A stretch of 64,000 bases of DNA, from the IMG/VR virus record IMGVR_UViG_3300025012_000028, positions 124,001 through 188,000 of that record, one strand, 5' to 3'. The translations under genes were made by a program, and so were the position numbers. The notes below the pieces were generated by a model. It worked only from the letters and a program-made list of their open reading frames with translations, searched no databases and was not told the origin of the DNA. This document shows, in pieces, positions 4,458 through 51,054 of this stretch (the stretch's first letter is position 1; every line of letters begins with the position of its first letter).

Positions 4458-5197
4458 GAATTTAATTTGGGTTTGGAATTAACTTTCTCTTCCACCCCAC
4501 GGAAAATTCCATGTTTCTCGCCCTCGATAACTCCCGCTTGGTAAGCATTGGGATCGACATTCACGTTCTGCCCACCACCTTCAAAGCGATCCTTACCATA
4601 TTTTTCGTCCATGTATTTGTTAATGAGGGCATTTTTAATTACCACTAGCGCATTTACCTGTTCGGTTTCCTGTGCTGACATTTTAATTTCATTTTCCACT
4701 TTCAGAATTTTCAGCTTCTCGCACACAGCGTTGACGAAACCCAAGGAGAAATCCTGTTTAGCTCTCTTGCCTTTATGAGTCTTGTTGTACTCATTCGCCT
4801 TGTTCACCAGAATGGAACACATGTAAGCATAAACAAATGTAGATACCGACACATCGGCTCTTTTCCCGATGAAGCGGAGACTGGTTTCAAATTTGATTTT
4901 ATCTTCCCCAACGTTGGTTTTTACCATCATGGTTTTTACCATGAAACTTTCGGCCAGCCAATATGCAATTTGAATTGTATAATTTTCATCTGAGTGTGCC
5001 ACAGCAAAATCAATTTCAATCACTTCTTCATTTGGAGATTTACGAGAAAGATCCGTTTCATCGATGTTGTATTTCAACATCAACTTACGAGCCATGTCCA
5101 TAGCCGAAGCGGATTCTTCTGGGTATGGAGAGCTATTCGCCAGAGCCATTAGGCCCATGATCTGAGATAGGATTTTATTCAGTTTTTCGTTTTGCAT
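4454..5197 (-). CDS. DUF2786-domain protein
   Basis: N-terminal KI..LMALANSS...EES.SAMDMARKLMLKYNI; C-terminal F.LGF...V and AYQAG motifs. Confidence 0.8.
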   Translation of the reverse strand: MQNEKLNKILSQIMGLMALANSSPYPEESASAMDMARKLMLKYNIDETDLSRKSPNEEVIEIDFAVAHSDENYTIQIAYWLAESFMVKTMMVKTNVGEDKIKFETSLRFIGKRADVSVSTFVYAYMCSILVNKANEYNKTHKGKRAKQDFSLGFVNAVCEKLKILKVENEIKMSAQETEQVNALVVIKNALINKYMDEKYGKDRFEGGGQNVNVDPNAYQAGVIEGEKHGIFRGVEEKVNSKPKLNS

Positions 5198-5223
5198 AAC
5201 CCTTCCTCCTTTAATTTAAAAAG

Positions 5224-5251
5224 AGTATATCATAATTTAAATTAAAGTCAA
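5224..5251 (-). promoter_or_regulatory. sigma70-type early promoter
   Basis: TTGACT TTAATTTAAATTATGA TATACT. Confidence 0.75.
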
Positions 5252-5763
5252 GGATTTTCGGTAAATAAAATAGAATTACATACGGCAAGAATTTCAATAA
5301 TAATCTTCTTGTGAGTTTTCGTCAATTTTCTTTTCCGTGAAATATAGTTCACTAATTCAACTGTGTCTTGGACATACTGAAGTTTCGGGTTGTCCGACAC
5401 ATTACTAAGACGATCCACCAATTTCAGAACCAGAGCATAATTAGAAATGCCCAAGAGTTTCTTCTTGAAGTATTCATTCTTACCCAGAAGTTTAATTTGG
5501 TCTTCATCGGAAGTCAATTCGTACACCAAAGAAGCCACCAACGGGGTAAATTCGTTAGCGAGATCCACAAACGAAGTGGCAGTATCCTCAAGGGTGTCAT
5601 GAAGAATAGCAGCACACACCAATTCTTCAATGTGTTTGGAGCGTTTGAAGCTGGTCAGGAGATAGCTGGTATTGATAGGATGGGTGACGTAAGGAAGACC
5701 AGAACCTTTCCGAACCTGATCCTTGTGTTTCTTCTCCGCAAATTTGAGTGCTTTATATATCAT
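5248..5763 (-). CDS. HD-domain small alarmone hydrolase (SpoT/Mesh1-like)
   Basis: A..FA.KKH.DQ.RKGSG.PY.THP, AAILHDTLEDT and LKLVDRLSN motifs; likely start MIYKALK. Confidence 0.85.
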   Translation of the reverse strand: MIYKALKFAEKKHKDQVRKGSGLPYVTHPINTSYLLTSFKRSKHIEELVCAAILHDTLEDTATSFVDLANEFTPLVASLVYELTSDEDQIKLLGKNEYFKKKLLGISNYALVLKLVDRLSNVSDNPKLQYVQDTVELVNYISRKRKLTKTHKKIIIEILAVCNSILFTENP

Positions 5764-5999
5764 AGTCCCACCTTCGGAAAATAAAATCTTTTCACCCAAT
5801 CAATTGCACTCACACACATTTCCCTATCGGGAACATCATTCTTTTTGCCGTGAGATGATTGTTTCCAGTTGACAATATCGTAATACCAATATGTGACTTC
5901 GGTATCATCATAATACCAATATGTGTCTTTGGTATCACGAAAGGAATGAAGAGACTCAACCACTTCCAAAATATCCCCATCCAATTTATAAGAAAGCAT
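5760..5999 (-). CDS. hypothetical protein with an internal 10-aa duplication
   Basis: TYWYYD occurs twice; imperfect 30-nt tandem repeat at 5881-5940. Confidence 0.6.
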   Translation of the reverse strand: MLSYKLDGDILEVVESLHSFRDTKDTYWYYDDTEVTYWYYDIVNWKQSSHGKKNDVPDREMCVSAIDWVKRFYFPKVGL

Positions 6000-6008
6000 T
6001 AGTTTCTC

Positions 6009-6335
6009 CTAATTTTTATTCTTGCTCCAAAATATATCTGCACTCCGCATTGCAGCTTCAATCCTTGCCCTACCAATAGGGTTTGCAGAATGGATATTCC
6101 ATTTGATGGGATCTAGTGTTTGATGATATGCGCGTGATTCGATGTATGCTGCTACATCATAACCAGTCCCACATTTTTCATCACCTAGATCATGATCAAA
6201 ATCTATTTCAGACACAACACCAGTTGAAATATATTCGATGGCCTGTTTAGCTGTCGTGCATCCATACCACCCAACCGGCACATGGCGATCTGGTGTATTG
6301 GGATCGTGTATTTGATCATCTAACCACAGTTTCAT
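6009..6335 (-). CDS. cyclic-phosphate processing receiver-domain protein
   Basis: MKLWLDD..R, DFDHDLG...GYD and IHSANP.G motifs. Confidence 0.8.
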   Translation of the reverse strand: MKLWLDDQIHDPNTPDRHVPVGWYGCTTAKQAIEYISTGVVSEIDFDHDLGDEKCGTGYDVAAYIESRAYHQTLDPIKWNIHSANPIGRARIEAAMRSADIFWSKNKN

Positions 6336-14167: not shown

Positions 14168-15220
14168 TTATTTTGTCATAAATTTTACAAAAGCTTCACC
14201 GTCTTCAGACCTATCTTCAGAAAAAGTTAACTTTTTAGGAAACATATCTCTAACATGTTGAAGTAATTCAGACATAATGCCTTGTCTTCTATATTCGGGT
14301 TTGGTATAAATATTTGCTACATGTCCTATTCCTCGTTTATTACTTAATACCTGAATTACCGCTATATGCTGTTCATTTTCATATTTTAAAAATCTATAAC
14401 TTCCATATTTATCTTTTAATACTTTAACTGTAGGTGACAAAATTTCTTCTTTTTCAACACCAACATAAGGATGTTCTTTATTTAGGAAAGAAACTAAAGT
14501 TTCATTACTTCTAATACTCTCAAATATATTATTACTTTCCCCATCAAACATTCCTCGGTTGTCCACATGCTTAATCTGGAACGGGAAAAATGCGACCCAA
14601 TGAGTTCTTCCGTTAGGATGCTTCTTAAACACTCCGTCATATCCTAAAGCTTGATATATTTTCCAATTGAATTCTTTAGGATGATCTGAATAAAAATCAT
14701 TCGCCAAAGAGAATAGACCTTTCACGATATTATCATTCTCAATAACATGAATTTCCGTTGCGGCTCTGATTACTTTTTCTTTGCCTTCCCATTCAACATC
14801 ACCATAATTGGAAAGTGCGTCTGCTAATTCGGGCGAACGTTTAATAAAGAAATTGATTTTATCATATTTCACATTTCCAATCTTATCAGCATCAAGTGGT
14901 TTCTTAATACAAAGATAGACCGGATGAACTGTAGGATTGTCAGACCCGCCTAATTTAGAACCTTTGGTGGATTCCGTCTTTCCTGTATATCCTTCCGCTT
15001 CTGTAATGTCGGTTGTAAAATAAAATCCACTACCAAGCTGATCAGCACCCTGATTAGTAAACTCATATTTAAATTCTTCTATGGCAGTTCCAGATCCATG
15101 ATAGCAAACTAATGGTTGTTTATTTTCGTCAACGACCTTGGAACCCCTAAACCATTTCCTGAACTTAGGGTTCTTGGTGACATCTAATGCTTCAGATAGA
15201 AATTGTTTAAAAGATATCAT
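14168..15220 (-). CDS. leader-tagged putative internal head protein: ART-PolyVal-like ADP-ribosyltransferase plus C-terminal GNAT
   Basis: MISFKQFLSE leader; YHGS...GSGFYFT...PVYL.IKKP...LGYDGV...VAF...QIK; GNAT motif A IYTKPEYRRQGIMSELL. Confidence 0.75.
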   Translation of the reverse strand: MISFKQFLSEALDVTKNPKFRKWFRGSKVVDENKQPLVCYHGSGTAIEEFKYEFTNQGADQLGSGFYFTTDITEAEGYTGKTESTKGSKLGGSDNPTVHPVYLCIKKPLDADKIGNVKYDKINFFIKRSPELADALSNYGDVEWEGKEKVIRAATEIHVIENDNIVKGLFSLANDFYSDHPKEFNWKIYQALGYDGVFKKHPNGRTHWVAFFPFQIKHVDNRGMFDGESNNIFESIRSNETLVSFLNKEHPYVGVEKEEILSPTVKVLKDKYGSYRFLKYENEQHIAVIQVLSNKRGIGHVANIYTKPEYRRQGIMSELLQHVRDMFPKKLTFSEDRSEDGEAFVKFMTK

Positions 15221-16287
15221 TCGAACTCTCCAAAAACATTATCGACAAGATACTTCAGCGTTTTCCAAATACCAGACGAAGTAATACTTTCAAATGCCTT
15301 TTCATCTCTATGTGGATTATTTCTCATTTCTTTGTAGCTAGTCCACACATCTTCGAAGCGTATAAAGAACTCTTGTGGGTTTTCATATACATAATTGTAT
15401 GTCGCACCAGTGAACACTCTCTGTTCCCAAACACTATTATCTTCATAGATATTGAAACTAAGTTTGACATATTTATTTCTTCTATCTTCGTTATAACTTG
15501 CGACTTTTATTTCTTTCATCTCAGGAAGTTGTTCCACTTCTTTATAATAATGCCAATCTCTATCGACATGTCTAAAAGATAAATCTAATGCCGCCTGACA
15601 TCTAGTTTCTGCCCATCGTTCCGATGACCAACCTGATGGTAATTTGTTTCTCATGTGGTTGAGTACATTGACTATTAGATCAATCTTAGGGAAATTGAAA
15701 ATTTTCAATGGAATGTTATAATGGTCACACCAAGATTCGAATACATCAAAATTCATTGGATCATCAAATTGGTTAAACACTTCCACAGCTCCACCTAAAA
15801 TTTCAGGATAAACCGCAACAGCAATTTTACTATACTTGTGTGCGGCATCATAATGTTTATCTATTATAAAATAGAATTTAATTCCTTTGTTTACGTAGGA
15901 GTTCCAGTGTGCTGGTGTGCTTTCTGTAATACACCATTTAGTTCCTGCACCATACTTGCGACTGGCCTCATGACTTCTAATATGATAAACATAAAACTCT
16001 TCATTCTCAAATATTTTGTCTGCATCTTTCGTTTTTACAATTTTTGTTTTGCGCTCAACTTCCTTATCTCTTTTCTTATCCACAAACTGATAGAATGACC
16101 AAAACCCTTTTGGTATCCAATAAGAAATATCTTTTTCACTTCCAGATAATTGATTTTTTGCTTTTAATTCTTTGAACCATTCGATATATTTATCAATATC
16201 TTTATCATTGTAATCCGGATTTCTCCAAACTCGTTTGGCATCGGCAAAGGATTCTACCAACAATATATAGGATTTGAAAGAAATCAT
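15217..16287 (-). CDS. leader-tagged putative internal head protein, PcfJ-like domain
   Basis: MISFKSYILLVE leader; EASRKYGAGTKWCIT...W.SY...FYFI motif. Confidence 0.6.
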   Translation of the reverse strand: MISFKSYILLVESFADAKRVWRNPDYNDKDIDKYIEWFKELKAKNQLSGSEKDISYWIPKGFWSFYQFVDKKRDKEVERKTKIVKTKDADKIFENEEFYVYHIRSHEASRKYGAGTKWCITESTPAHWNSYVNKGIKFYFIIDKHYDAAHKYSKIAVAVYPEILGGAVEVFNQFDDPMNFDVFESWCDHYNIPLKIFNFPKIDLIVNVLNHMRNKLPSGWSSERWAETRCQAALDLSFRHVDRDWHYYKEVEQLPEMKEIKVASYNEDRRNKYVKLSFNIYEDNSVWEQRVFTGATYNYVYENPQEFFIRFEDVWTSYKEMRNNPHRDEKAFESITSSGIWKTLKYLVDNVFGEFE

Positions 16288-16499
16288 TTTATTTCCTTGA
16301 TATTATATGAATCGGGTGTGCGCCTAAAATAACTCTCCACCGATCTTCCTAGTTTCTTTGATAACCCAAAACACATTTTCTTGAATGCTTCATCCTGACT
16401 TGCCGCTTCAGTAGACAGATAATGATTTTCTTTATGGTAGCAGAATGTTCCTTTGAATTTGGATGCTTCCGAAAGATATTGTTTAAATCTAATCATCAC
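16284..16499 (-). CDS. small leader-tagged putative internal head protein
   Basis: MMIRFKQYLSE leader; 71 aa, basic, similar in size to T4 IPI. Confidence 0.65.
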   Translation of the reverse strand: MMIRFKQYLSEASKFKGTFCYHKENHYLSTEAASQDEAFKKMCFGLSKKLGRSVESYFRRTPDSYNIKEIK

Positions 16500-17418
16500 T
16501 TCTCACCTTAGCATCTTTCCATTTGTTAGACAAGAATTCAATTACTTCTTTTGTCGATTTGAGTTTATATCGATGCATTCTCTTCACAAGCTTCTCGACA
16601 CTCATAGATTTAATTTCATCACTTTTATTATTGTGTATATCATTATTTAGAGTTGCTAAAGAGTCACCACGATAGTTATGATAAACTATTTCATATCTTA
16701 AATCATCTGCTTCTGAAGAAAGATCTTTGACTTCATCTTTATCGAATAACTCGACATAGAGATTTATTTTTTCTGGTCTACCACCCATACCACTTTTCAC
16801 TTTTTTCTTATTCAGAAGCATGAATGATTCAAAGTCTTCATAAAAATAAACTGGAATGCTATAAACGTTTGAATAATCAAGTATCTTTTTGTACATTCTA
16901 TTTCTTTCCCATGCATTGTGTTGATCATTCAGAGAAAGTTTTTCAAACGCTTTATAGTCGGAATTAATGAGAAGGTAATTCTTATCTACCATAATATGAA
17001 TTTCTTTGATATATTCATGTGCATTTTCGATTATGGATGTGGGAGAAAAGATTCTGTCCTCATTCTCTTGGTTACGCAACCGCATATCAAGAGATACACT
17101 CGGTCTTCTGAAAGATGGCCCCCAATAATCTACACTCTTACCGGAAAGATTATGAGAAAGTTTCGTACCATCCAACACAAGATTGACCTGTTCGGAATTA
17201 CCAAAGCTTCTAGCATAACCACCATATTTAATTCTACTGGTAGAAAAATAAAATGGTTTAAACTTTTTCCCTTTGTACATCTGATCTGAAGCAGTTCCTA
17301 AATCAGATGCTAATCTAAACTTATCATCTTTAAGAATTGATACTAGTTTATGAACACCAGTATGATGATAGAGAATGGGTGATACACCTTCTATAAGAAA
17401 CTCTTTGAAAGATATCAT
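16489..17418 (-). CDS. leader-tagged putative internal head protein, ART-fold candidate
   Basis: MISFKEFLIE leader; LYHHT...IL, FSTSR and ENEDR (H / STS / ExE arrangement). Confidence 0.55.
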   Translation of the reverse strand: MISFKEFLIEGVSPILYHHTGVHKLVSILKDDKFRLASDLGTASDQMYKGKKFKPFYFSTSRIKYGGYARSFGNSEQVNLVLDGTKLSHNLSGKSVDYWGPSFRRPSVSLDMRLRNQENEDRIFSPTSIIENAHEYIKEIHIMVDKNYLLINSDYKAFEKLSLNDQHNAWERNRMYKKILDYSNVYSIPVYFYEDFESFMLLNKKKVKSGMGGRPEKINLYVELFDKDEVKDLSSEADDLRYEIVYHNYRGDSLATLNNDIHNNKSDEIKSMSVEKLVKRMHRYKLKSTKEVIEFLSNKWKDAKVRSDD

Positions 17419-17693
17419 TTTGGGATGTCCTGTACTTTTATTATTTTTGTAATTTTAGCATATTTTGGATGTACATAATCCAACCTATCAAATAAAACAT
17501 GAGCACGTTTAAGTGTCATTACTTCTGGTTCATCTGTTATATGAATATCATAACCACCCCAACCTATAAATTGTTTAATCCCTTTACGTTTTCCTACATA
17601 AATTACATATTCTTCTCTACCACTATTTCCAATTTTAGTGAGATAATCATCTAATGCTTTATCTTCCTTTATGAATTCTTTAAATGAAATCAT
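17415..17693 (-). CDS. small leader-tagged putative internal head protein
   Basis: MISFKEFIKE leader; ATGA overlaps at both ends. Confidence 0.7.
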   Translation of the reverse strand: MISFKEFIKEDKALDDYLTKIGNSGREEYVIYVGKRKGIKQFIGWGGYDIHITDEPEVMTLKRAHVLFDRLDYVHPKYAKITKIIKVQDIPK

Positions 17694-18508
17694 TTTTTCT
17701 TCCTTATCTTAACTAAAGAATCATCAAACAGAACATAATTCAATTCATTACTACTATCCCCAAAGTATTTAGTTCCGGCGATACCAATAGAAGCAAAATA
17801 CAAAGATGCTTCTTTGGCTGAACCAAATATATGTTTAGCTAGTCCATATATTTGTTCACCACTCTGGTTCCAAAATCTATATGATTCATTTTTTAAAACA
17901 TCATTCAGTGGGATTGACTTTACTTCATCCCCCATATCTTGAAGAATTCCTTTAGGATGAGCCTTCTCAAATAAAGGAATGAGTTTCTTTTTTATTGGTT
18001 CGCTCTGTTCTTTGAGAGATTTATTCCAATGAAGAAATTCATCTTCTGAAGGAATGATATCTACATGATACAATTTACCTTTTGACTTCTTAACTTCTCT
18101 TTGTTGATTGATATTCTGTGCTATTTCATCCATCTTTTTATAATAACCCAAACCATTATCTTTAGTCCACTCTTCTCCATTCAGAGCATCATTCAACATA
18201 CCAGATATAAACTTCTTTGCTTTTTTCAGACCCATAGTATAAATTAAATCTGCTGCTTTTTGTTCAGGTGTTCCAGCTTTAGTTTTAATTCCATTTATTT
18301 CGTAGAACCAAGGAACCGGAGCATCACCAACCTTTTTACCTATATACCATTCAGCAACTTCCTTCTTAGAACTGAAATATAAACCCCACCCATATGCAGC
18401 AGCACCCTCACCACTACCGATATGTTGAAGTTTGAACTCATCAAAATCGTAGGGTGATCCATGATAAGCAATCGGAGATTCAATTAAAAACTTTTTGAAT
18501 GATATCAC
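17690..18508 (-). CDS. leader-tagged putative internal head protein, ART-PolyVal-like domain
   Basis: GTG start MISFKKFLIE; AYHGSP.DFDEF...GSGEGAAAYGWGLYFS...Y, GKLY.V, GIAG.KY and NYVLFDD motifs. Confidence 0.75.
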   Translation of the reverse strand: MISFKKFLIESPIAYHGSPYDFDEFKLQHIGSGEGAAAYGWGLYFSSKKEVAEWYIGKKVGDAPVPWFYEINGIKTKAGTPEQKAADLIYTMGLKKAKKFISGMLNDALNGEEWTKDNGLGYYKKMDEIAQNINQQREVKKSKGKLYHVDIIPSEDEFLHWNKSLKEQSEPIKKKLIPLFEKAHPKGILQDMGDEVKSIPLNDVLKNESYRFWNQSGEQIYGLAKHIFGSAKEASLYFASIGIAGTKYFGDSSNELNYVLFDDSLVKIRKKK

Positions 18509-20090
18509 TCACCCTCCCCATCTGTTTTCCACTGCATAACATCTTTAAAGATAAGATATTCATTATCACTGAACCACCCACTTCTCAACCTAAGATGTTT
18601 GACCTCATTGGCGATTGTGGTTTCAACTGGTTCTTGGTGATATTTATCCTTATCCCCTCCTACAAAACCTTTCTTTTTGAACTTGGTGTTGTCGTGGTAA
18701 ATTTTATCTAAAAGCGCCAACATCTGCTCTGCGCCCTGTGAATATTTTTTCTCGTGCTCATGTCCTTCCCAAGATGCTTTCTCGTCCTCTAGGTAATCCT
18801 CAAGCGTTTTACCGGCATTTGTTTTCATCTGTACATATGACGCTTCAATATATGCTCGATACCACTCTTGATCTGAAAGAGGTTCCCATTTAACCCCATA
18901 AATTTCGGCAAGAGTTGTGATATCAGATTCATAAGATTTGATCAGTTTGATATTATCTAATTTTCTTTTTTCATGTCTTGCGTCTACTTCTTTCGATTCC
19001 ATCTCTTTACGAGAAAATTCAGGAACAAAATCGGTTCTGTCCTTCAGAGTTTTCCAATCTTCACCAATCTCTTTGGCTATATCAATAAATTTAGTTTCGG
19101 CATCCCACGAAAAGTTATAAGGTTCCTTCTCCGAATAGATGTTAACTCTGATTCTATGGTGATCATACTTTTTAGAATATTTGTGGGGCTTCTCACCCAG
19201 ATTAAGATTATCCATATAGGATTGAGGGAAAGAAAATTCTGTATCAATCCTTCTACCTTTCTTAGTCCATGACTTTTCTTTGCTAAATTCTTTGATTTTA
19301 TCTCCAATCTGCATGGCGATCATAGCCGCAAGCTTCCTATGTAACTTAGCTTCATCTTTTGATGTTCCTAAACCACCAGCAGAAAGATATTCGGATTTGG
19401 GATTTAGTTCATAAATGTCTACGATCTTGAAGAACTTCTTATTGAAGAACACGGCTTGCCACGGTTCCCTATCATTGATGATTGCCGACTTTTGGTTTCT
19501 GGCTTCATCAATAAGTCCATCATAGCCCAAGGATTTCCAGAACTGCATTTGTTCTTCGCCAGTTTTTAATTCAGGTTTCACATCATCAAAATATCTATTC
19601 TTCTGAAAATAGAATTCTTCTGGATTTGAAACCTGTGACATTTTAAATAAAGCTTGTTTGTCGTTACATTTATATCTTTTTTAGCTGCTTTGAGATAGTA
19701 ATCATTCAATCCCAACGCTCTAAGAATCCTATCCATGATATGATTCTGCATGGTCTGAAGGTGGAGAATGTTAGGTGAACCAACTAACTCAATAACTCTG
19801 AGGAATCTAGCTCCACGACCATACCAAACGTCTGCGGGATGCTGGCATAAATAAGATAAAGGATAAAGGTAAATTCCTTCTGGGTCTGAGTGGGAGGAGT
19901 CTCGTTGGTGTGGTGATGAAAAATTCTTATTTAAAATATCGGTGTCGGGATTCATTGTAAAATTACACCAATATTGATTTTCAGATGATGTTTTTAATAT
20001 TTTATTCCATTTTTTATAAAATAAATGGAATTGCTTGGGATAGATATCATGAAAATGAATCTCAGTTAAAAAGCTTTTGAAAGAAATCAT
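18505..20090 (-). pseudogene. leader-tagged ART-like gene split by a -1 frameshift (ORFs 19578-20090 and 18505-19641)
   Basis: Leader MISFKSFLTE and PEGIYLYP lie in the 5' ORF; LGYDGLID...EPWQAVFFN lies in the 3' ORF; the second frame opens exactly at the A6 run 19677-19682. Confidence 0.7.
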
Positions 20091-20115
20091 TATTATGCCT
20101 CTGTGTGTTTAAAAT

Positions 20116-20123
20116 TATTTATA
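20116..20123 (-). promoter_or_regulatory. T4-type late promoter TATAAATA
   Basis: Exact consensus about 25 nt upstream of the MISFK start at 20090. Confidence 0.75.
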
Positions 20124-20149
20124 AAATCTATATTGAGGATAAACCAATC

Positions 20150-21079
20150 ATGAAAGATAAAACATATTATATCATTTACGAAACTACAAATTTATTAAAT
20201 GGTAAAAAATATAGGGGAGCGCATAAAACTAAAAATATAAATGATGGGTATATGGGGAGTGGTGTGATAATTAATCAAGCAATTTTGAAATATGGAAAAG
20301 AAAATTTTGAAACAATTCATTTAGCATATGCGTTATCATATGATGATCTTTTTTGGTTAGAAGAATATGTTTTCGTGACTAAAGAATGGGTTGATTTGCC
20401 ACATTCTTATAATTTAAGAGTGGGTGGATGTGGCAAATATTACGAAGAACAAACTAAACAAACATGTTTAGACAAATATGGGGTTGAATTCTATTCCCAA
20501 ACTGAAGAATGTAAACTTAAGAAAATTAACACATGTTTAGAAAAATATGGAGTTGAATTCTATGTTCAAACCGAAGATTTTAAGTTGATAATGAAAAATA
20601 AATACAGCGAAGATAACCCACATCCCTTAACTGGCAGGCCAGTTTTACCAGAAACAAAAGAAAAACTCAGAATCGCAAATTTAGGAAAAGTCACGTCAGA
20701 AGAAACCAAAGCAAAAATAAGCGTAAAATCTTCTGGTAAAAACAACCCTAATTATGGTATTAAACATACAAATGAGACTAAAGAAAAATGTAGCAAAGTA
20801 AATCAAAAATATGAATATAAACTAATTTCACCTAATGGTGAAATTTTCACAACTTTATCATTATTTAATTTTTGTGCCGCAAATGAACTGGATAGAAATG
20901 CATTTAGAAATATTCTTAGGGTTGGTAGAACGACCGTAGAATGTCCCAAAAATGTTACACAATGTAGTAAGTTAAGATTTAATACTACTGGATGGTCGAT
21001 AGAAGAAATGGAGATTATCCCAACTTCACCCAAAGCAAAGTATCCAAGAGAGAAATCATCAATTCCACTCCGTTGGTAA
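20150..21079 (+). mobile_element. GIY-YIG (Seg-like) homing endonuclease with NUMOD3 repeats
   Basis: YIIYETTNLLNGKKYRGAH...DGYMGSG...AILKYGKENF...E...YNL.VGG; ETKEKL / ETKAKIS / G.NNPNYG repeats; likely ATG at 20150 after GAGG. Confidence 0.85.
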
Positions 21080-21652
21080 ATTCCAAACTTCTATTTTATC
21101 TTTTGGTTTAACTACTTTCGAATTGGTGATCAGTTTCATATTGAATAGAACAACCATTCTTTCTCCCCACCCAAATGCGTTATCAACAATTGAATAGTCC
21201 ACACCATGTTGCACTAAGAACCGTCTCAAATTGTTACTGTCGGATGGTTTGATTGCTTCATAGTTGACCATTATGTTTATGAAGATGACTGCGCTAATTC
21301 TATCTTTGTAATTATATTTTGATGCTGCCACTAAAACTTCTTTCCGTTTAGATTTGATACAGTAATATTTCACAAAATCATCGATGGCATGAAAAGGAAT
21401 TGAGGCTTCTTTAGCATCCACACCCTTTTGAATTGTGACAAGATATAACTTCCTACTTCCCTTTTTATATTTCTCTACCACATTATATGAAGTAGTCAGA
21501 TATAAACCGGGAGCAAATTGGAATCTACCTTTCTTCTGAATATAATTTTCATCGGGACCATAATCTAAATTGCCCCCATGCCAGAAAGAAAGAGTATTGG
21601 GTTCTGTAGATGGGGAAATGAGATCTTCGAAGATGGTTTTATATGATATCAT
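21059..21652 (-). CDS. leader-tagged putative internal head protein, ART-like domain
   Basis: MISYKTIFE leader; FWHGG...GRFQFAPGLYLTT...KLYLV...GVDYSIV...VVLFN. Confidence 0.65.
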   Translation of the reverse strand: MISYKTIFEDLISPSTEPNTLSFWHGGNLDYGPDENYIQKKGRFQFAPGLYLTTSYNVVEKYKKGSRKLYLVTIQKGVDAKEASIPFHAIDDFVKYYCIKSKRKEVLVAASKYNYKDRISAVIFINIMVNYEAIKPSDSNNLRRFLVQHGVDYSIVDNAFGWGERMVVLFNMKLITNSKVVKPKDKIEVWNLPTEWN

Positions 21653-22236
21653 TCGGTTTCCTCGTTACAAAACTTTACCCAATCTTCAACACTGTTCAAA
21701 TGTTCTTTAAGCTCATATAAATCATTTATCACAAAAACCCATTGTCGCATACCGATACAATAACAGAGATGTCTACAGAGATATTGTGCTCTATTATAAC
21801 TATCAAGAGCCATATGAGATTTACCATAATCTTTGAGTCTCTGATATAATGCACGTCTGAAATCATTTTCAGTGGGATATTTTTCTAAGAACTTCTCTCT
21901 GTTCTCACTCCTGTTGATTCTATAATCATAATTATTGGAAATGTTTTCTTCCATCTCACGTTCAAACCCATAACTGTCCGTGAGATACTTCAGAACTTTA
22001 TTGACTTTATCCTTACAATATTCATAACCATGTGTATCCCACATGATTCTTTGAAATGCTCGGTTAATAATATCCCCTGCGTGTTCGACTACTGGATTAA
22101 GGACACCACCACCCATCAACATCTGAACCTTTAACATTAAATCTTCGGGTTCACCACGTTGATCTAAAGCTATCTGTATGCTTTTGGCTTTAAAAGAATC
22201 ATCTGATTCAGACAAATATTCCCTAAAAGAAATCAC
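21649..22236 (-). CDS. leader-tagged putative internal head protein, unknown helical domain
   Basis: GTG start MISFREYLSE; 4-nt overlaps on both sides. Confidence 0.7.
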   Translation of the reverse strand: MISFREYLSESDDSFKAKSIQIALDQRGEPEDLMLKVQMLMGGGVLNPVVEHAGDIINRAFQRIMWDTHGYEYCKDKVNKVLKYLTDSYGFEREMEENISNNYDYRINRSENREKFLEKYPTENDFRRALYQRLKDYGKSHMALDSYNRAQYLCRHLCYCIGMRQWVFVINDLYELKEHLNSVEDWVKFCNEETE

Positions 22237-22913
22237 GCTGCCTCCAAATAACCCGGTTTAGTATACTTAGCCAGAGCCGGATTCTGATCATCTACAATAA
22301 TTTCATCTAATACATTCAATTCGTCTGGATCGTGCCACGGATCGATACACACTATCATACCATCAGAAGGACGCTCCATGAAATTCCCAACGTGAATATC
22401 CAGCCTACCGAATTCTCTTCCCTCTTCCATCTTTAACATTGCGTTTCTGAGACTCGGACCTTGAGGAAACATATCTTTATTCTTCTCTGCTCTTCTACCA
22501 ACCCGACCCACGAACCATTCATCCTGTACATCCATAATTACTTGATCAACGAATGTCTCATTACCTTCCGACATAGGTTCAAGCTTTTCTAATTTGACCA
22601 ACTTAATCAATTCGTCTTTACGGGAACGTCTATGGAAAGCAGGAATGGTTTTCATTCGCCCCAACACTCTAGGAAAATGGGGATTGTTTCTGTTCTCGGA
22701 TTTGAGAATATATCTAAGGAAGGATTCATAAGACTGATCTAAAGTCCAAACCTTGATCACATAGTTCTTACTTGGTATTTCAAAAACCTGTGAGTGAGCA
22801 CCACTACCCACTTCTCTCCACTTAAGTTTCTTGAAAAGATTTTTGAGGGAATTGGCACCATAGAATTTCTTCACATTGTATAACTCTAATAAAAATTGTT
22901 TGAAAGAAATCAT
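22233..22913 (-). CDS. leader-tagged protein-kinase-like enzyme
   Basis: MISFKQFLLE leader; VGSGAHSQVF glycine loop, VIK lysine, LEKL, DIHVGNFM catalytic loop, CIDP metal-binding motif. Confidence 0.8.
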   Translation of the reverse strand: MISFKQFLLELYNVKKFYGANSLKNLFKKLKWREVGSGAHSQVFEIPSKNYVIKVWTLDQSYESFLRYILKSENRNNPHFPRVLGRMKTIPAFHRRSRKDELIKLVKLEKLEPMSEGNETFVDQVIMDVQDEWFVGRVGRRAEKNKDMFPQGPSLRNAMLKMEEGREFGRLDIHVGNFMERPSDGMIVCIDPWHDPDELNVLDEIIVDDQNPALAKYTKPGYLEAA

Positions 22914-22940: not shown

Positions 22941-22948
22941 TATTTATA
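22941..22948 (-). promoter_or_regulatory. T4-type late promoter TATAAATA
   Basis: Exact consensus about 27 nt upstream of the first array gene. Confidence 0.8.
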
Positions 22949-40811: not shown

Positions 40812-40830
40812 TTAATTTTCCTCCCAAAAT

Positions 40831-40874
40831 AAAAAACGTATCCGAACTTTACATCCGAATACGTTTTTTGTCAA
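40831..40874 (-). terminator. terminator ending the second leader-tagged cluster, overlapping a sigma70 promoter
   Basis: AAAAAACGTAT...ATACGTTTTTT stem; TTGACA-17-TAAAGT. Confidence 0.7.
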
Positions 40875-40892
40875 TATATTTTTAGATTAATT

Positions 40893-42629
40893 TTAATTAA
40901 CCATATACCCAAATCCAGATTCATCTTTTAAAAAGTTCCTTGCGTCCAATTGTTCCCAACCGTCGAACCCGTAGTACGGCTGACTCGTTTTTATTTCAAA
41001 TCCAATTCCATTTTCCAATTCAAAATCGGAATCAGTTAATAACAACATCACAGTTTTGAAATTCGTATATACTTTCATTGGTGCCTGATTCCATTTATTA
41101 TCTACATCATTAATAAATGCCTCATCTTCTAGGTCGTTATATGTTTCCCCTCCAATTGTTATATCAAAACTTTTCAGCCCACCGTCTAAAGCAGACATCA
41201 TTTCGTTATATCTGCCACCTTCAATACCTCTCTCCGCTGCCCATCTACATTGAGTATAAAGATCATCTCCCTCATCTTCCAAAAACTGGAACATATCATC
41301 TTCCCAATTTTCTTCATCCTCGTCCGGATATTCTTTTCTAATATACTCTTCAACTTTCTTTTCGTCCAACATTTCATAACATTCTCTTATAGTATCATCA
41401 CTCACTTCTATATCTGGGTCCGAATCTTGGTCTACTATCCATTTGGTTGTATCGTCACCATAATTTTCAACTAGGTCTTCTAAATCTCTGGCTTCATATA
41501 TGACTGCAAATTCTTTCTTTTCATCCCACTCTAAAGAATGAAGATCTTTCGAAATCCAGAGTTCATTCATTCTCTGCATAAATGAATCGGTTTTTCCTAC
41601 TTTCTTATAATAATCCATCAAACCCATCAACTCGGGTCGTTGTTCAAATAAATCTTCTTTAAATTCATCTGACAAATCTTCGGTACTAAAATCCGAATCT
41701 TGTCCATAAGAGGAACGTTCTATCCCTTTGATATAATAACTTTCGGTTCCCTTGGTTGATGTTACTTCTTTATGGAGCAGCAAATCCAGAATGTACTTGT
41801 GGTACTTCTCAACGGGTTTGGTATTTTGTTTGCCCTTCATTTGATATAAGATATGATCATCACTACCCATCTCAAAAGTCAGATGGGGTTCCCATAACCA
41901 CGTAGACGGTTCAGATTTGCGTTTGTTGAGGTATCGGAGGGAAAGTAAGGTACTACCATGACTTCCAGTTCCGCAGTGTCCCATTGCCCTACTCTCGTTG
42001 CTACAGTAGTTGGTGTTGAGGTCTACCCAATACCAACCGTTCCCATACTCGATTATAGGAAAACATCTTTTGTCTGGATAACCTTCTTCATGATCCAATG
42101 GTTGTTTGATATACTGAACTGTTCCATCTAACTCTGATGCCCATTCCTTTTCAATCTTTTCCATATCGGCAAACACTTCTTCGGGGAATTTACCGGTAGG
42201 ATTATAATCATCAATCTCTTTTAAGTGAAGATCCAGAAAGTGTTTATATTGAGTCAATGTTTTTCTAGGTAGAAAATCATTTTGCATTTTACTATCTAAT
42301 ATGTCGGGTCTATCCGCCAGATTAAATTTTTTACATTCGCTTTGTAAAAGTTTTTTGTAATATTGTTTTATGTTCTGTTCAGCAACTTTATCATCTAGAG
42401 TTAAATTGTCTAGTGTCCATGCCATATATATCTGCATTAATTTATTATACCAAATAATTCTAAAATTCTTTTTTAAATACTCTGGCGATTGAAGAACATA
42501 AGATCTATAATATGTGTCGATTACCGGAGTAACTTTACCCAATTCCAAAACTTTGGTAAACATCTGCGAATAATCATATGCCTCAAGCAGCAGAGGAGCA
42601 TGTAAAAAGGTTTTAAAAGAAATCATCAT
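40893..42629 (-). CDS. leader-tagged putative internal head protein, PcfJ-like domain plus acidic C-terminus
   Basis: MMISFKTFLHAPLLLE leader; ESRAMGHCG...LLSLR...PHLTFE...QMKGKQN.KP..KY motif. Confidence 0.7.
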   Translation of the reverse strand: MMISFKTFLHAPLLLEAYDYSQMFTKVLELGKVTPVIDTYYRSYVLQSPEYLKKNFRIIWYNKLMQIYMAWTLDNLTLDDKVAEQNIKQYYKKLLQSECKKFNLADRPDILDSKMQNDFLPRKTLTQYKHFLDLHLKEIDDYNPTGKFPEEVFADMEKIEKEWASELDGTVQYIKQPLDHEEGYPDKRCFPIIEYGNGWYWVDLNTNYCSNESRAMGHCGTGSHGSTLLSLRYLNKRKSEPSTWLWEPHLTFEMGSDDHILYQMKGKQNTKPVEKYHKYILDLLLHKEVTSTKGTESYYIKGIERSSYGQDSDFSTEDLSDEFKEDLFEQRPELMGLMDYYKKVGKTDSFMQRMNELWISKDLHSLEWDEKKEFAVIYEARDLEDLVENYGDDTTKWIVDQDSDPDIEVSDDTIRECYEMLDEKKVEEYIRKEYPDEDEENWEDDMFQFLEDEGDDLYTQCRWAAERGIEGGRYNEMMSALDGGLKSFDITIGGETYNDLEDEAFINDVDNKWNQAPMKVYTNFKTVMLLLTDSDFELENGIGFEIKTSQPYYGFDGWEQLDARNFLKDESGFGYMVN

Positions 42630-43010
42630 TTACCTCAACGTCCCAAGTTTAATAAAATCACCCGAATCTAACAGTTCGTGTACTCCGGTTCCATATTTCA
42701 TCCCAGAATGTTTAACTGCATATTGACTTCCAGATTCCTCTTCACCTATAGTTTTTGTAAGATACATAGGGGAATCAAATTTAATATTCCAACTATAACC
42801 AGTCACCTGATAAACTTTACCAGTCTTATTTGATTTGAATCTATCACCCACTCCCAAGCGCCATCCTTGGTATGCCTCAATCTTTTCCATCATGTCTTTC
42901 ACACCAAGCTTAATATCATCCCTCAATTTCTTATGAAACTCCCTTTCGGGTCTGGTGATAAGAGGAATGGGTTCTTTATCTTCGGTGATAAATTCTTTGA
43001 ATGAAATCAT
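42630..43010 (-). CDS. leader-tagged putative internal head protein
   Basis: MISFKEFITE leader. Confidence 0.7.
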   Translation of the reverse strand: MISFKEFITEDKEPIPLITRPEREFHKKLRDDIKLGVKDMMEKIEAYQGWRLGVGDRFKSNKTGKVYQVTGYSWNIKFDSPMYLTKTIGEEESGSQYAVKHSGMKYGTGVHELLDSGDFIKLGTLR

Positions 43011-43036
43011 GGAGTTATCCTATATGAATTTTTTAT

Positions 43037-43065
43037 TTGACAATTACGGATTTCGGAGTTAAAAT
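43037..43065 (+). promoter_or_regulatory. antisense sigma70 promoter
   Basis: TTGACA-17-TAAAAT on the plus strand, with no plus-strand ORF downstream. Confidence 0.6.
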
Positions 43066-43124
43066 AATCTTGTCCGTTAGGACATAGACATCTACTGCCT
43101 TTTATTATAGGACAATGGACAATC

Positions 43125-43556
43125 CTAGAAATCATCATCTTCATCGGGAGGAATGACTTCTACAACATCATATTTCTCACCAATATATTTATTTGAATAT
43201 AAAAAGTCCTTCATATCTTCTACATCGACCCAACCTAATTTAAGATTGGTGGAAGTCAGAGTTATAATGCAGCTATACTTTTTAAATTTCTTCATTTCTC
43301 CAACAAAGTTAATTTCCAAACACAGAGGTTTTTCTAATTCAAATTTCCGCGCAACATCTGTATGTAGAATGGTATCCCCGAAACCATAAACAATTTCACC
43401 ATCCACAACAACTACTCTCATGATATCCCAACTCTTAACAACCTCTATGGATTTGATTTCATCAAAGGTGGGATTTTCGAATATAAGTTGTTCCTCACGC
43501 TTATACATGTAGGAATCTTTATAATTTTCGGATAAAAATTTTTTGAATGATATCAA
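43125..43556 (-). CDS. leader-tagged putative internal head protein
   Basis: TTG start MISFKKFLSE. Confidence 0.65.
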   Translation of the reverse strand: MISFKKFLSENYKDSYMYKREEQLIFENPTFDEIKSIEVVKSWDIMRVVVVDGEIVYGFGDTILHTDVARKFELEKPLCLEINFVGEMKKFKKYSCIITLTSTNLKLGWVDVEDMKDFLYSNKYIGEKYDVVEVIPPDEDDDF

Positions 43557-43559
43557 TGG

Positions 43560-43715
43560 TTAGTTCCTCGAATGGTTATGTTTACCGTTAGAATGATAAT
43601 CATTATTAAGGAGTCGTCTCAGTGCAAGATCAAAACGTCTAGCAAGTAAAAAATCACACTCAGATATCGACTTGGCCTTTTCTCTTCTCAATCCTTCGAT
43701 GATTAGTTGTTTCAT
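43560..43715 (-). CDS. 51-aa hypothetical protein (not in ORF track)
   Basis: MKQLIIEGLRRE...HSRN* fills the gap between the tailspike and the leader-tagged cluster. Confidence 0.4.
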   Translation of the reverse strand: MKQLIIEGLRREKAKSISECDFLLARRFDLALRRLLNNDYHSNGKHNHSRN

Positions 43716-43769: not shown

Positions 43770-46700
43770 TTATACTAGTGTTAATGTGGTACTCCGCACT
43801 GTGCCGTCCGAACCCTTGACTTTTACCGTCAAGGTAGTGTTGTCGGTCAACTCGAAAGTCATTTCCCCGTTTACTGTTGGTGTTGCCGACGTGAGGGGAA
43901 AAGCTGAAACGTAATCCGTTGTAGGGGTGTAGGCTGCTGTACCAAGGTTTGATGATTTCACCAGCCCGTTTATTATAAACGTCGAATAAACCCCACCGTC
44001 ATTAGTGAGTAGATAACCATCGCCGGTCCCTTGATCTTGTTCATACTGGTTAATGATAGTTGCCATCATGATGATGCCATCATGAACTGAGACCAAGGAG
44101 CCAGAGCCGAACACTGTGGACCCACTTAGACCCGCCCCCGGTGTGGCTTCTCGTGCCTGAAAGATTGTGCCGACTGCATTGGACGTAGAAACATACCCGA
44201 CTTGAAGCGGCGTAAAATCAGCATCGGTGTTATTTAGTATCTTATACCACCCTCCGACCTCAATATTCGTCAAGTTCGTATAAGAAATCGGCGTGCTGGC
44301 GAAAATGGCCCTCGATTGCCGTCCAATTCCCTGTTTTGATCTCAGATCGTCACCATTGACCCTGAGATTAAGCATATAATAGTTACCAAGAACCACACCG
44401 TAACGAACTGCTGGTGTGCCGGAAACATACCCCCCATTGCCATCTACTGTCATATCGAGAGTGCTGGCATACATTCCATAACTAGAGTTGCCCAACCGGA
44501 ATCCGTGTGAACCGTTCTCTTGTGCTTCTATTGTACCTTGGTGGTTCGCTCCGGTGAGAATTACCGCACCTTCAAAGTCATTAGCAGCAGTACCGAAATA
44601 TGGAACAATATCGACAGATGAACCTGTGGTGGAGATGTTGAGCCGTCTAGAAAGAAAAACTTTGATGTCGGAATACTGAATATTCTTGTTTGCGAATCTC
44701 GCCGCCAAACCCCAGTGCATTGCACCGCCAATCTGGATTTTCGACAATTTGCTATCGTTGGCCTTGCCGAGGTCCAGCCCCGAACCATCGACCCGCTGAA
44801 CAATCAGCCCCTCAATTACTAGGTTGCTAGCGTACCCTTCATCGTTACTAACAACCACGCCGTGACCACCACTCAACAGATGCGCTCCAGTGCCGGAATC
44901 GCGGATATCGTCGGCTGCGAACTCCTCGCGTAGGCCGTACACGCCTCCAGCGGCCCCCGATCTGTGTCCCGCGAAGAATTCAACTCTGGTGTCGGAAAGC
45001 GTCCGGGAATAAGTGTTGTCCACACCTTGGGCAATGTATATGCCGCTCCCCACCGAGAACAACCCCCCACCAGCCTGACCATCGACCGTAAGCCCATGGA
45101 TAGACCCGTACGCGCCGGTCCAGCGAATGACATAAAGCAAGGCGTCAGCGGCGTCATCTCCGGAAGGTTTGAATCGTATCTTACTGGACGCTGAACCATC
45201 CCCGATGAGATGCACTTTTGATTTCAACTCAACATCACGCCACCACGTAACCCCGCGCGGGACAAAAACGGAGCCGCCGTTTAGCGCGGCTTGCACATCA
45301 ATCGCGGCTTGCGCGGCTGCCGAATCGTCCGAGCCGTCATATTTCGCGCCGAACCATTTAACGTTGACCGCCCCGGTGTAATCCCTCAGCCATGCAGCCG
45401 AACCGTCGCCGCCTGTCGGCACAATGACGGTGCCGTTGTTGTCGGTGTAGGTGCCCGGTGAAGCACCTGAAACCCAACGGAAATGACCTCCCCCACCATC
45501 TCCTGCCGAAGTGTGATTCTCAAGGTATATAGATGGCACAGTGCCGTTCGTGATGCCTCGTAACGCCGTGAGGTTTGTCACGACCAAGCCATCCATAGCA
45601 TCTTGCACCGCCTTGACCGCTGCCGAGTTCGCCGCCGTGGTTGTGGAGTTAGAAGTAGTGGAGGATGAAAGCTCCGATGTTGATACAATATCCCCGAACT
45701 TTAAACCACCCACAACTTTCGATGGGTCGAAATTGTGTGGACCCACAAGTACCGGTTCTAGTGCTGCCGCCACATCAACTTCAGTAGTAGGAGGATATGT
45801 CTCTGAGTTAATTTTTCGGAAGGATAAGATTGTAGTTCGTGAAGCATTACCATCTATCAAAAGATGTTGTGCATCGGGCGCTGCCGCAGCACCTATGGTG
45901 TCCTGTCTTGACATTCCCGAAATAATACTGTTACCTTCCCCACCTGAAATACGGTAGCTCCTGCCGGGAAACTCAGCAGACCTGTTAATGTTGGCTTCCA
46001 CACCGGACCCACTCAGAGTTACGGCGTTAGCACCGTCCAACCAAAAACCTAGTCCGGCCTGTTCGATATATGTGCCGTTTATATTGACTGTAGTTGGACC
46101 ATATAGATAGACCCCAAGGATAATATCTCGTACACTAGAACTAATAAAAGTATGACCGTCACCACCATCTATAAATATTCCGGCATAACCACCTTGAAAA
46201 ATTTTGACCTGATCATAGGTACAAAATGCACCAGTACCCACATAAAGTGATATATCATTGAGGTAACGTAGATGAACATTACGTACAGTCAAATTAGTAA
46301 GTATTTCTTGGGAGCTAACATGAATATCAATACCTTTATTCCCCGTGCCGACCCATTGACCCGGACCATCTATCCCAAAATTGGATAGATATACCCAATC
46401 TGTATCGACACCTAACAATGCTGGACCATCAAAGTCAGCCTTGATAAGTCCTGAGTCCAATGGTGACACACCGAAAATACGATGTCCGTCGCGCAGTGTA
46501 AGGGGTGCTGATATTTTACACCATGCCGGAAGTAGTATACTAGTTTCTGAGTCAAGTACAGCCTGTATTGCAGCTCTATCATCCGTTATACCGTCACATA
46601 CAGCGCCTCTTGTTTTAACATTGACCGCATGTGTGTCTATCTGATCCTGCACCGCCTTGGTTAAAGAGTTAATTGAAGTTTTAACCGAATTACCATTTTG

Positions 46701-46772
46701 AACAATAGGTACTTTTTCTAAACCAGATAGTGGTATCGTAGCTTCATTAAATTCAGATATTTTCTTTGCCAT
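43770..46772 (-). CDS. tailspike/depolymerase with two pectate-lyase-like beta-helix modules
   Basis: KKISE N-terminus; VNVK.RGA..DG.TDD..AIQA and VNVKWFGAKYDG.DD..A.QAA; tail-fibre repeat between them. Confidence 0.85.
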   Translation of the reverse strand: MAKKISEFNEATIPLSGLEKVPIVQNGNSVKTSINSLTKAVQDQIDTHAVNVKTRGAVCDGITDDRAAIQAVLDSETSILLPAWCKISAPLTLRDGHRIFGVSPLDSGLIKADFDGPALLGVDTDWVYLSNFGIDGPGQWVGTGNKGIDIHVSSQEILTNLTVRNVHLRYLNDISLYVGTGAFCTYDQVKIFQGGYAGIFIDGGDGHTFISSSVRDIILGVYLYGPTTVNINGTYIEQAGLGFWLDGANAVTLSGSGVEANINRSAEFPGRSYRISGGEGNSIISGMSRQDTIGAAAAPDAQHLLIDGNASRTTILSFRKINSETYPPTTEVDVAAALEPVLVGPHNFDPSKVVGGLKFGDIVSTSELSSSTTSNSTTTAANSAAVKAVQDAMDGLVVTNLTALRGITNGTVPSIYLENHTSAGDGGGGHFRWVSGASPGTYTDNNGTVIVPTGGDGSAAWLRDYTGAVNVKWFGAKYDGSDDSAAAQAAIDVQAALNGGSVFVPRGVTWWRDVELKSKVHLIGDGSASSKIRFKPSGDDAADALLYVIRWTGAYGSIHGLTVDGQAGGGLFSVGSGIYIAQGVDNTYSRTLSDTRVEFFAGHRSGAAGGVYGLREEFAADDIRDSGTGAHLLSGGHGVVVSNDEGYASNLVIEGLIVQRVDGSGLDLGKANDSKLSKIQIGGAMHWGLAARFANKNIQYSDIKVFLSRRLNISTTGSSVDIVPYFGTAANDFEGAVILTGANHQGTIEAQENGSHGFRLGNSSYGMYASTLDMTVDGNGGYVSGTPAVRYGVVLGNYYMLNLRVNGDDLRSKQGIGRQSRAIFASTPISYTNLTNIEVGGWYKILNNTDADFTPLQVGYVSTSNAVGTIFQAREATPGAGLSGSTVFGSGSLVSVHDGIIMMATIINQYEQDQGTGDGYLLTNDGGVYSTFIINGLVKSSNLGTAAYTPTTDYVSAFPLTSATPTVNGEMTFELTDNTTLTVKVKGSDGTVRSTTLTLV

Positions 46773-47372
46773 TTAGATAAACCCCTTTGAAGCAATAAAA
46801 TATGCGTCCGTCAAATCCCATCTACCACTACTCATAGAGTATTTAGAAAATTCATTTTGAATGTTTTCAGGAAGCTTACAAAAAGTTCTAAATTTTATGT
46901 TGGTAGATAAGATCAAATCAATATTATCTTTAGAAAATTGTAGTTTATCTTTTCTAGTCATTTCTTTATAACCGGCCTTTTCTTTGAGAGAAAGCAATTC
47001 TTTTTTTGTAAGACCTAACTCTTTATTCTCTACCTTGGAAAATAGTGGTGACCGCCATTCCATCACTTTAAAAACCTTCAAAGGTATAGTGGGAAAATCT
47101 TGTTTAATTTTGATACGCAAATACCAGTTCTGCCCCGCAATAAGATCCTTTTCGCCGGAAGGAGAATCATATGATAAATCTTCTAACGTCAACATATCCG
47201 GTTTGCAAAATGAAATGAAACTACAAATTTCATTTATATTATGAATTAATAGTGCTTCATCATTCAAATCTTTAGATGATGATTGAATGAGTTTATAATC
47301 AAACAAATTTTTATCTTCTAATAAACAAAGTCCAGAAGATCGTAATGACAAATCTATACCTAAAATCCTCAT
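46773..47372 (-). CDS. RuvC-like Holliday junction resolvase
   Basis: MRILGIDLSLRSSG, LEDLSY, W and DLTDAY.IA motifs. Confidence 0.8.
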   Translation of the reverse strand: MRILGIDLSLRSSGLCLLEDKNLFDYKLIQSSSKDLNDEALLIHNINEICSFISFCKPDMLTLEDLSYDSPSGEKDLIAGQNWYLRIKIKQDFPTIPLKVFKVMEWRSPLFSKVENKELGLTKKELLSLKEKAGYKEMTRKDKLQFSKDNIDLILSTNIKFRTFCKLPENIQNEFSKYSMSSGRWDLTDAYFIASKGFI

Positions 47373-51011: not shown

Positions 51012-51054
51012 TATTTATAACAAAAAAACCTCCCATATCAATGGGAGGTTTTTT
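51012..51054 (-). promoter_or_regulatory. terminator followed by late promoter TATAAATA
   Basis: AAAAAACCTCCCAT...ATGGGAGGTTTTTT hairpin; TATAAATA at 51012-51019. Confidence 0.75.

Follow-up and report, generated by a model that had tools for sequence, protein, structure and literature searches.

IPI, IPII and IPIII, internal proteins of bacteriophage T4, are each cut once by the prohead protease gp21 beside a leader of some 10 amino acids (aa), MKTYQEFIAE, which is known as the capsid-targeting sequence (CTS), and foreign proteins that are fused to this sequence get packaged. The T4 Ip proteins have nothing in common but the leader; T4 encodes them at two loci, and across the T-even phages at least 10 have been reported. 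Alt and gp24 of T4 also lose short N-terminal propeptides, and Ip1, Ip2 and Ip3 inhibit restriction enzymes of type IV. Proteins that are co-injected with the DNA are at work before expression of the phage genes begins, and they form a main route for disabling host defences. Here we describe a comparable leader in DNA of an uncultured T4-like phage that originates from a groundwater metagenome. The window, i.e. the whole stretch of 64,000 nucleotides that was analysed, covers bases 124001-188000 of the 214,553-bp virus record IMGVR_UViG_3300025012_000028 (GC content 36.5%); positions are those of the window unless given as genome positions. Three adjacent genes on its minus strand begin with the common N-terminal pattern MISFK-x-F-[LI], and they quite probably encode internal head (cargo) proteins of this distant T4 relative, which would be packaged, cleaved and injected by means of a CTS-type leader.

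The leader most likely represents the form that the known T4 CTS takes in this phage, a match that was not named in the earlier note on this DNA, which had been made from the letters alone. In both systems a leader of about 10 aa stands at the extreme N-terminus, ends in [L/I]-x-E, and precedes proteins that are otherwise unrelated and are encoded at more than one locus. The leader is as long as MKTYQEFIAE and agrees with it in a hydroxyl residue at position 3, aromatic residues at positions 4 and 7, I or L at position 8 and E at position 10, and this genome also encodes a gp21-type protease and a gp22-type scaffold. The differences concern the consensus, which is MISFK-x-F-L-x-E here, the scale, with some 20 genes in six loci instead of three Ip genes in two loci, the cargo, which reaches 801 aa and includes enzymes, and the leader genes themselves, which have diverged synonymously. 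The T4 CTS/internal-protein system is what was known, and its probable occurrence in a very divergent phage, on about 20 genes and with new cargo families, is what is new.

By analogy with T4, each cargo protein would be synthesised late in infection and carry a short CTS at its N-terminus, and this tag would bring it into the gp22-type scaffolding core of the prohead, where the gp21-type protease would cut once after [L/I]-x-E. The mature protein would remain in the head and enter the host cell together with the DNA. If the analogy holds, early takeover of the host or counter-defence would be the most likely role of the cargo. Packaging, cleavage, late timing, injection and cargo function are the steps that we infer.

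A common leader and a T4-type head

The cluster consists of two small genes followed by a large one. The 143-aa gene (43125..43556, minus) starts with TTG and has the leader MISFKKFLSE at 43527-43556, and the 126-aa gene (42630..43010, minus) has the leader MISFKEFITE at 42981-43010. The TTG start is credible because an in-frame TAA lies two codons upstream, the public gene call also gives 143 aa, and relatives of the protein begin with MISFKDFLLE and MISFKEYLKE. The third gene (40893..42629, minus) was first called as an open reading frame (ORF) of 578 aa with the N-terminus MMISFKTFLHAPLLLE. Its start is more likely the second ATG (42626), which is preferred because a GAGG box lies about 6 nt upstream and the resulting 577-aa protein has an exact MISFK; the extended 15-aa leader of this protein, MISFKTFLHAPLLLE, is encoded at 42582-42626 (minus). 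The leaders end in FLSE and FITE at residue 10 of the small proteins and in LLE at residue 15 of the 577-aa protein, and cleavage is predicted after E10 in the 143-aa protein, after E10 in the 126-aa protein and after LLE15 in the 577-aa protein. Structure prediction for residues 1-60 of the 126-aa precursor in complex with the gp21-like protease scored 0.01, which speaks neither for nor against this. A Sec or lipoprotein signal peptide was considered and ruled out, as the leader has just 10 residues, with K5 and E10, and is without a hydrophobic core. Immediately upstream of the 143-aa gene and in the same frame, a 51-aa ORF without a family match is present (43560-43715, minus), separated from the TTG by TAA-CCA only.

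The canonical leader has 10 residues and can be written as M-I-S-F-K-x-[F/Y]-[L/I]-x-E. A strict pattern has 16 N-terminal matches in the gene set, against 0.003 expected, and no internal match in about 62,000 aa. With a position matrix, 17 of the 253,051 six-frame positions that were scored reached at least 18 bits, and all of these are minus-strand ATG, GTG or TTG starts; the top site that is not a start has 15.3 bits. In total, about 20 tagged genes in six loci were counted (17 canonical and three variant leaders), with every copy located at a start codon. The count adds to the 17 the two extended leaders (MISFKSYILLVE and that of the 578-aa protein) and the leader MISYKTIFE. Leader genes are found at about 57.6-59.8, 82.9-88.6, 138-147, 164.9-167.6 and 199.4 kb of the genome, with a possible second class at 110.8-114.3 kb; the copy at genome position 199412 is MIRFKEFIAE. 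The presence of three adjacent leader-tagged genes, which the earlier note had claimed, is therefore borne out by the ORFs, the start codons and the genome-wide statistics, and the distance of 18 kb to the first array of tagged genes (end at 22913) measures 17,980 bp. The site of 15.3 bits, FIEFKESLTE, lies about 45 residues into the gene for an NAD-dependent DNA ligase (L086 ~8575, genome 202575, minus) and is probably a chance match.

Selection acts on the leader peptide, to judge from its codons. Within the canonical leaders, 45% of the codon pairs that encode the same residue differ synonymously, and conservation is lowest at the third codon position (0.63, vs 0.79 and 0.88 at positions 1 and 2). 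Nucleotide identity reaches 0.68 in the leader, as against 0.32 over the upstream 27 nt and 0.29 over codons 11-19, and the similarity among tagged genes stops sharply at codon 10. The synonymous divergence and the sharp boundary argue against a recent duplication and against an element that acts at the level of the mRNA. This contrasts with T4, where the leader copies that were located in NC_000866 with a back-translated pattern search, at 65689-65718 and 66386-66415, are identical in DNA sequence. No third copy was present in NC_000866 within 3 mismatches of this pattern, so that the remaining T4 ip gene must have a leader with a more divergent DNA sequence.

The phage also encodes the head proteins with which such a leader would have to work. 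Its prohead protease is of the gp21 type (Peptidase_S77, 60.2 bits, above the cut-off), has 31% identity to T4 gp21, and keeps the GE-x-HP and S-RG-G blocks. The adjoining gene encodes a gp22-type scaffold (T4_CASP, E = 6.5e-20; also phrog_237). The capsid protein, of the gp23 type, shares about 30% identity with its counterparts in cultured T4-like phages, and further T4-type genes specify a gp24-like vertex protein, the large terminase and the tail sheath. In alignments, where a slash stands for the actual or putative processing position, NYLME/DGSTS of the capsid protein is positioned close to SFLTE/AEIGG of T4 gp23, and NFLKE/SALSSS of the vertex protein is aligned to MAKINELLRE/STTTNS of T4 gp24, while LLIE forms the start of both the T4 gp21 and the phage protease. 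An L-x-E is thus found at or near the aligned T4 processing positions in three head proteins of this phage; the ending [F/Y]-L-x-E of head-protein sites therefore matches that of the leader, [F/Y]-[L/I]-x-E. Elsewhere in the genome, a 140-aa ORF (L086:9325-9747, genome 203325-203747, minus) has a sub-threshold Peptidase_S77 match (24.9 bits vs a cut-off of 27 bits) and may be a degenerate protease paralog. Its neighbours are replication and recombination genes, namely those for a RecA/UvsX-like protein, the NAD-dependent DNA ligase and an SMC/AAA-type ATPase.

Homologs in other phages and properties of the proposed cargo

The three-gene region has no nucleotide match among 50,697 phage records, and a tblastn search with the 577-aa protein against the same records gave as sole match a hypothetical protein of Salicola phage SCTP-2. 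A word-index homology search of 5.8 billion clusters returned the 126-aa protein itself only, so that it is an ORFan at this scope, and self matches only for the 143-aa protein. For the 577-aa protein, 35 homologs were found, all of them metagenomic. The pattern [L/I/M]-x-E is present within residues 4-22 in 32 of 34 homologs, vs 26% of internal windows (p = 7e-17). The closest homologs keep LL-x-E directly before the mature start A-x-DY-x-Q-M-F, and two of them (P0004 and P0006) additionally retain an earlier L-x-E. By this ortholog pattern, the extended leader is a family trait, and the 577-aa protein has lost the first site. The earlier suggestion of an extended leader that still ends in L-x-E is hence supported for the 578-aa family, and the elements for targeting and for cleavage may be separable.

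In other phages the cargo is found under other leaders. One contig (L006) belongs to a T4-like phage, as it encodes gp13, gp14 and gp15, and its homolog of the 577-aa protein lies within a tagged array in which unrelated members start with MSIPSFKQFLILE and MKFNIPSFKQFISE; the leader is of the type IPSFKQF. On other IMG/VR contigs, a family member and an unrelated neighbour carry a tag of their own, for example on L012 (MRAKEFLLE and MRAKQFLIE), L031, L042 and L029. The tag follows the phage and not the cargo. The 143-aa protein has seven distant relatives in an exhaustive search, and four of these bear CTS-like leaders; relatives of this protein begin with MKKFKQFLTE or MKSFKQYIAE. The domain also occurs in tandem: P0042, a metagenomic protein of 866 aa, has six copies, each with x-x-E directly before EW-DS-K, and the repeat starts match the predicted mature N-terminus of the 143-aa protein, E/NYKDSYMY. 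This suggests an arrangement as if a polyprotein were cut into units by the prohead protease. A second protein, P0041 (740 aa), also repeats the domain of the 143-aa protein. The proposal that the leader is a functional address tag instead of a local duplication is supported by the unrelated proteins that bear it, their six loci, the synonymous divergence and the boundary at codon 10, and it is further backed by the T4-type protease and scaffold and by cargo homologs in other phages with leaders of their own.

The mature 577-aa protein has a mass of 66.6 kDa, a pI of 4.5 and a net charge of about -50. Its structural model has a mean predicted local distance difference test (pLDDT) value of 81.9, with low confidence in the leader. 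A conserved core extends over residues 165-340 (41607..42134, minus; alignments A3 and A4), with W200, E211, H217-C218-G219, S229, R231, T250, K264-G265, N268 and P271 as invariant residues, and when modelled in isolation this core reaches a pLDDT of 91.3. The earlier note had recognised a PcfJ-like motif in this protein. No Pfam or PHROG match was obtained for any of the three cluster proteins, and neither the 577-aa protein nor its core matched PF14284 at E values up to 1 (gathering score 25 bits). PF14284 is matched by eight of 28 homologs over the core from MGHC to QMKG, all of them below the threshold, with a best score of 22.5 vs 25 bits. Foldseek connected the model to 'PcfJ-like protein' clusters of AFDB with E values of 1.5e-4 to 4e-4, but with template modelling (TM) scores below 0.3, and a viral cluster of the ESM Atlas in which 21% of the members have PF14284 was found with a TM score of 0.83 (normalised by hit). 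Thus, the PcfJ-like character finds partial support in structure searches and in sub-threshold homologs, and it fails at the level of a Pfam match.

The fold of the core points in a further direction. Of the top 50 VIA matches, nearly all have GNAT, MYST, HAT1, ESCO1 or FemA folds, with Z values of 3.5-5.8, where the trust level is 8. A Foldseek search against the PDB gave nothing at E <=0.001 with either the whole model or the core (best core E 0.026), and a profile search of PDB sequences produced chance matches only. The core of the 577-aa protein may be described as distantly PcfJ-like, with a modelled fold that resembles acyl-CoA N-acyltransferases; the acyltransferase-like fold is a consistent lead that lies below the trust level of the tool. 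Outside the PF14284 domain lie a long helical region at the N-terminus and the C-terminal half of the protein, which is acidic. For PcfJ itself, the tools and articles consulted gave no functional description, and a literature search for the name was swamped by C. elegans pCFJ plasmids.

After the predicted cleavage, the 143-aa protein would be acidic (about 15.7 kDa, pI 4.5) and the 126-aa protein basic (about 13.3 kDa, pI 9.1). The protein atlas returned nothing for the former. For the latter, a small beta domain similar to DUF1653 is a weak structural lead (TM 0.47 / 0.66) that is not relied on. The tagged cargo of the phage as a whole is mutually unrelated: it comprises ADP-ribosyltransferases (ARTs) of the ART-PolyVal type, one of them fused to a GNAT domain, as well as a GNAT protein, the PcfJ-like protein and proteins without a family. 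Two tagged genes, g83855 and g84760, are paralogs that have APIDPWDISWK in common after the leader.

Transcription, related systems and rival explanations

Upstream of the cluster lie genes for a 1575-aa baseplate wedge protein, for fibre proteins and for a fibre or spike of the pectate-lyase type with 1000 aa. Directly after the stop codon of the 578-aa gene an intrinsic terminator is present, with a 16-bp hairpin and a U-run (40825..40868, minus). It was missed by a simple terminator scan and confirmed by folding (dG -20 kcal/mol, z = -4.87, 0/200 shuffles as good). The nearest upstream T4-type late box, TATAAATA, is located on the coding strand at 51012..51019 (minus); the genes between this box and the cluster are tightly packed, and no other intergenic late box with at most one mismatch occurs between 51019 and the cluster. 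A fibre and cargo operon, closed by the terminator, probably starts at this box. The upstream fibre and baseplate genes, the folded terminator and the packing from box to cluster agree with the position at the end of a tail operon that had been noticed before. Across the genome, TATAAATA precedes the genes for capsid, protease, portal, sheath, terminase, vertex, baseplate and fibres. Such boxes also precede leader-gene units: a same-strand upstream box exists in five of the six loci, and in the sixth, class-B locus it lies upstream of the first gene. None of the leader-tagged genes has a recognisable early function, and the refuting finding named in the earlier note, a motif common on early, non-virion genes, was not obtained.

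Besides the internal proteins, other described systems resemble this one in part. Like T4 Alt, which is a late-made ADP-ribosyltransferase with a gp21-processed N-terminus that is packaged in the head and injected, some of the tagged proteins have ART domains; however, the ARTs here are of the ART-PolyVal type and not of the Alt/VIP2 clade, and there is no ART among the three cluster genes. Polyvalent proteins (Iyer et al. 2017, PMC5512222) have effector domains, also of the ART type, that enter the cell with invading DNA, but many such domains are combined in one giant polypeptide, whereas here they are encoded by separate genes with tags of their own. The term PcfJ does not occur in that article (PMC5512222). 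The head and ejection proteins of the giant phages SPN3US and phiKZ have N-terminal propeptides that are cut at x-x-E by a T4-related prohead protease, and conserved N-termini occur there on diverged paralogs. Their propeptides are mostly 80-130 residues or longer, compared with 10-15 residues here, and the cut follows A/S-x-E instead of L/I-x-E.

Some observations weigh against the interpretation of the three proteins as injected head cargo. There is no late box directly upstream of the cluster; the nearest is 7.4 kb upstream, and co-transcription of the cluster from that box is presumed from the gene arrangement. The 577-aa protein has no E at position 10, so that its site is predicted from the orthologs only. 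Moreover, two of the three cluster proteins are strongly acidic, whereas T4 internal proteins are described as highly basic. This acidity, together with the position of the cluster at the end of a tail-fibre operon, would fit a different role, in which the leader is a propeptide for the prohead protease or for an assembly factor and the proteins are auxiliary core or scaffold parts that are degraded and expelled, or are sent to the tail or baseplate, without being injected. We consider this unlikely, because the leader also flanks the gp24-like head vertex gene and tags ART and GNAT proteins, which are typical injected effector enzymes. Adjacency to tail genes, as found for this cluster with its fibre and baseplate neighbours, is also seen with the Alt-family genes of T4-like phages, which adjoin baseplate genes though Alt is packaged in the head.

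The remaining explanations give the peptide no present role. A function of the 5' coding segment in the mRNA, either as an enhancer of translation initiation or as an unstructured A/T-rich start, would agree with the A/T-rich codons of the leader and their position after Shine-Dalgarno-like boxes; unstructured gene starts are favoured in many phage genes. It is nevertheless very improbable, since third codon positions are the least conserved and so many identical residues are encoded by different codons, and since the motif ends in a protease consensus that homologs of other phages keep as [L/I/M]-x-E while the rest of the leader changes. Slighter still is the probability that the common N-termini are relics, without present function, of duplications or of recombination cassettes that shuffle genes. 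In T4-type genomes, mobile regulatory cassettes mediate modular shuffling according to PMC2839356, and adjacent tagged genes, with the paralogs g83855 and g84760 among them, suggest tandem expansion; the T4 leader copies at 65.7 and 66.4 kb are even identical as DNA. However, most of the tagged proteins here belong to different families and are unlike each other after codon 10 (identity 0.29), and the six loci, the synonymous divergence and the recurrence elsewhere with own tags require selection on the peptide.

If the proteins are indeed packaged and injected by way of a CTS, the shared-leader logic of T-even phages would extend to this phage, which has a capsid protein with only about 30% identity to those of cultured T4-like phages, and such leaders would offer a simple means of listing candidate injected effectors in uncultured phages. 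The widespread but uncharacterised PcfJ-like family, which occurs in 386 IMG/VR stretches, and the small repeat-forming domain would then acquire a likely role as packaged, injected cargo. It is possible, although we would not call it probable, that a wide set of uncultured T4-like and jumbo phages, including this one, command an uncommonly large arsenal of injected effectors, each with its own address. If true, this arsenal would here consist of about 20 tagged genes and possibly a second tag class, with ARTs, GNATs and a PcfJ-like protein whose core combines a divergent acyltransferase-like fold with an invariant pair of His and Cys. Leaders that are specific to a lineage and end in [L/I]-x-E could then serve as a general sequence signature for injected takeover and anti-defence proteins in metagenomes, and some phages may deliver domains as polyproteins that are cut by the prohead protease, as in P0042.

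Other tagged genes and features near the cluster

The first array of tagged genes in the window (14168..22913, minus) has about 11 members. It includes the leader-tagged fusion of ART-PolyVal and GNAT (14168-15220, minus), the gene with the extended leader MISFKSYILLVE (15217-16287, minus) and a further leader-tagged ART-PolyVal gene (17690-18508, minus). Variant leaders within this array are MIRFKQYLSE and MISYKTIFE, and late boxes are located at 22941-22948 and 20116-20123. A separate leader-tagged GNAT gene is found at genome 59011-59424. The largest tagged protein has 801 aa and the leader MIPFKNYINE (L004:11165-13570, genome 86165-88570, minus); its gene, with a TATAAATA box of its own, is placed immediately upstream of that for the gp24-like vertex protein, and the tagged protein has a sub-threshold Lcl_C-like match at the C-terminus.

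A candidate second class of leaders is formed by MSILESILNE, MNIFDSILKE and MSILHKILEE (genome 110832-114303, minus), which belong to genes at L087:2832-3098, 3095-3592 and 4171-6303 (minus). MSILHKILEE heads a 710-aa protein with a TATAAATA box upstream. The class resembles MNKFQSILQE and MSIFSKLLQE of contig L006, and its proteins belong to no Pfam or PHROG family.

At 40846-40874 (minus), the 5' flank of the terminator that follows the cluster, and also its stem, are overlapped by a sigma-70-like promoter, TTGACA-17-TAAAGT (10/12 matches). This promoter faces genes for a hydrolase (phrog_3668), a weakly DnaJ-like/kinase-like protein, a nucleoside 2-deoxyribosyltransferase-like protein and a DUF559 protein, and the combined terminator/promoter site looks like a boundary between late and early regions. 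On the other side of the cluster, the 1000-aa pectate-lyase/beta-helix fibre or spike gene (43770-46772, minus) has a GC content of about 52%, vs 36.5% for the genome, which suggests that a receptor-binding or depolymerase module was recently acquired by horizontal transfer. It is preceded by a gene for a RuvC-like Holliday-junction resolvase (phrog_159; 46773-47372, minus), which is situated between tail-fibre genes inside the presumed late operon. Within the cluster itself, the 143-aa and 126-aa genes are separated by a gap of 114 nt (43011-43124) that contains a small hairpin (43071-43084) and, after it, a T-rich stretch, and this hairpin may be a weak attenuator or a processing site inside the operon.

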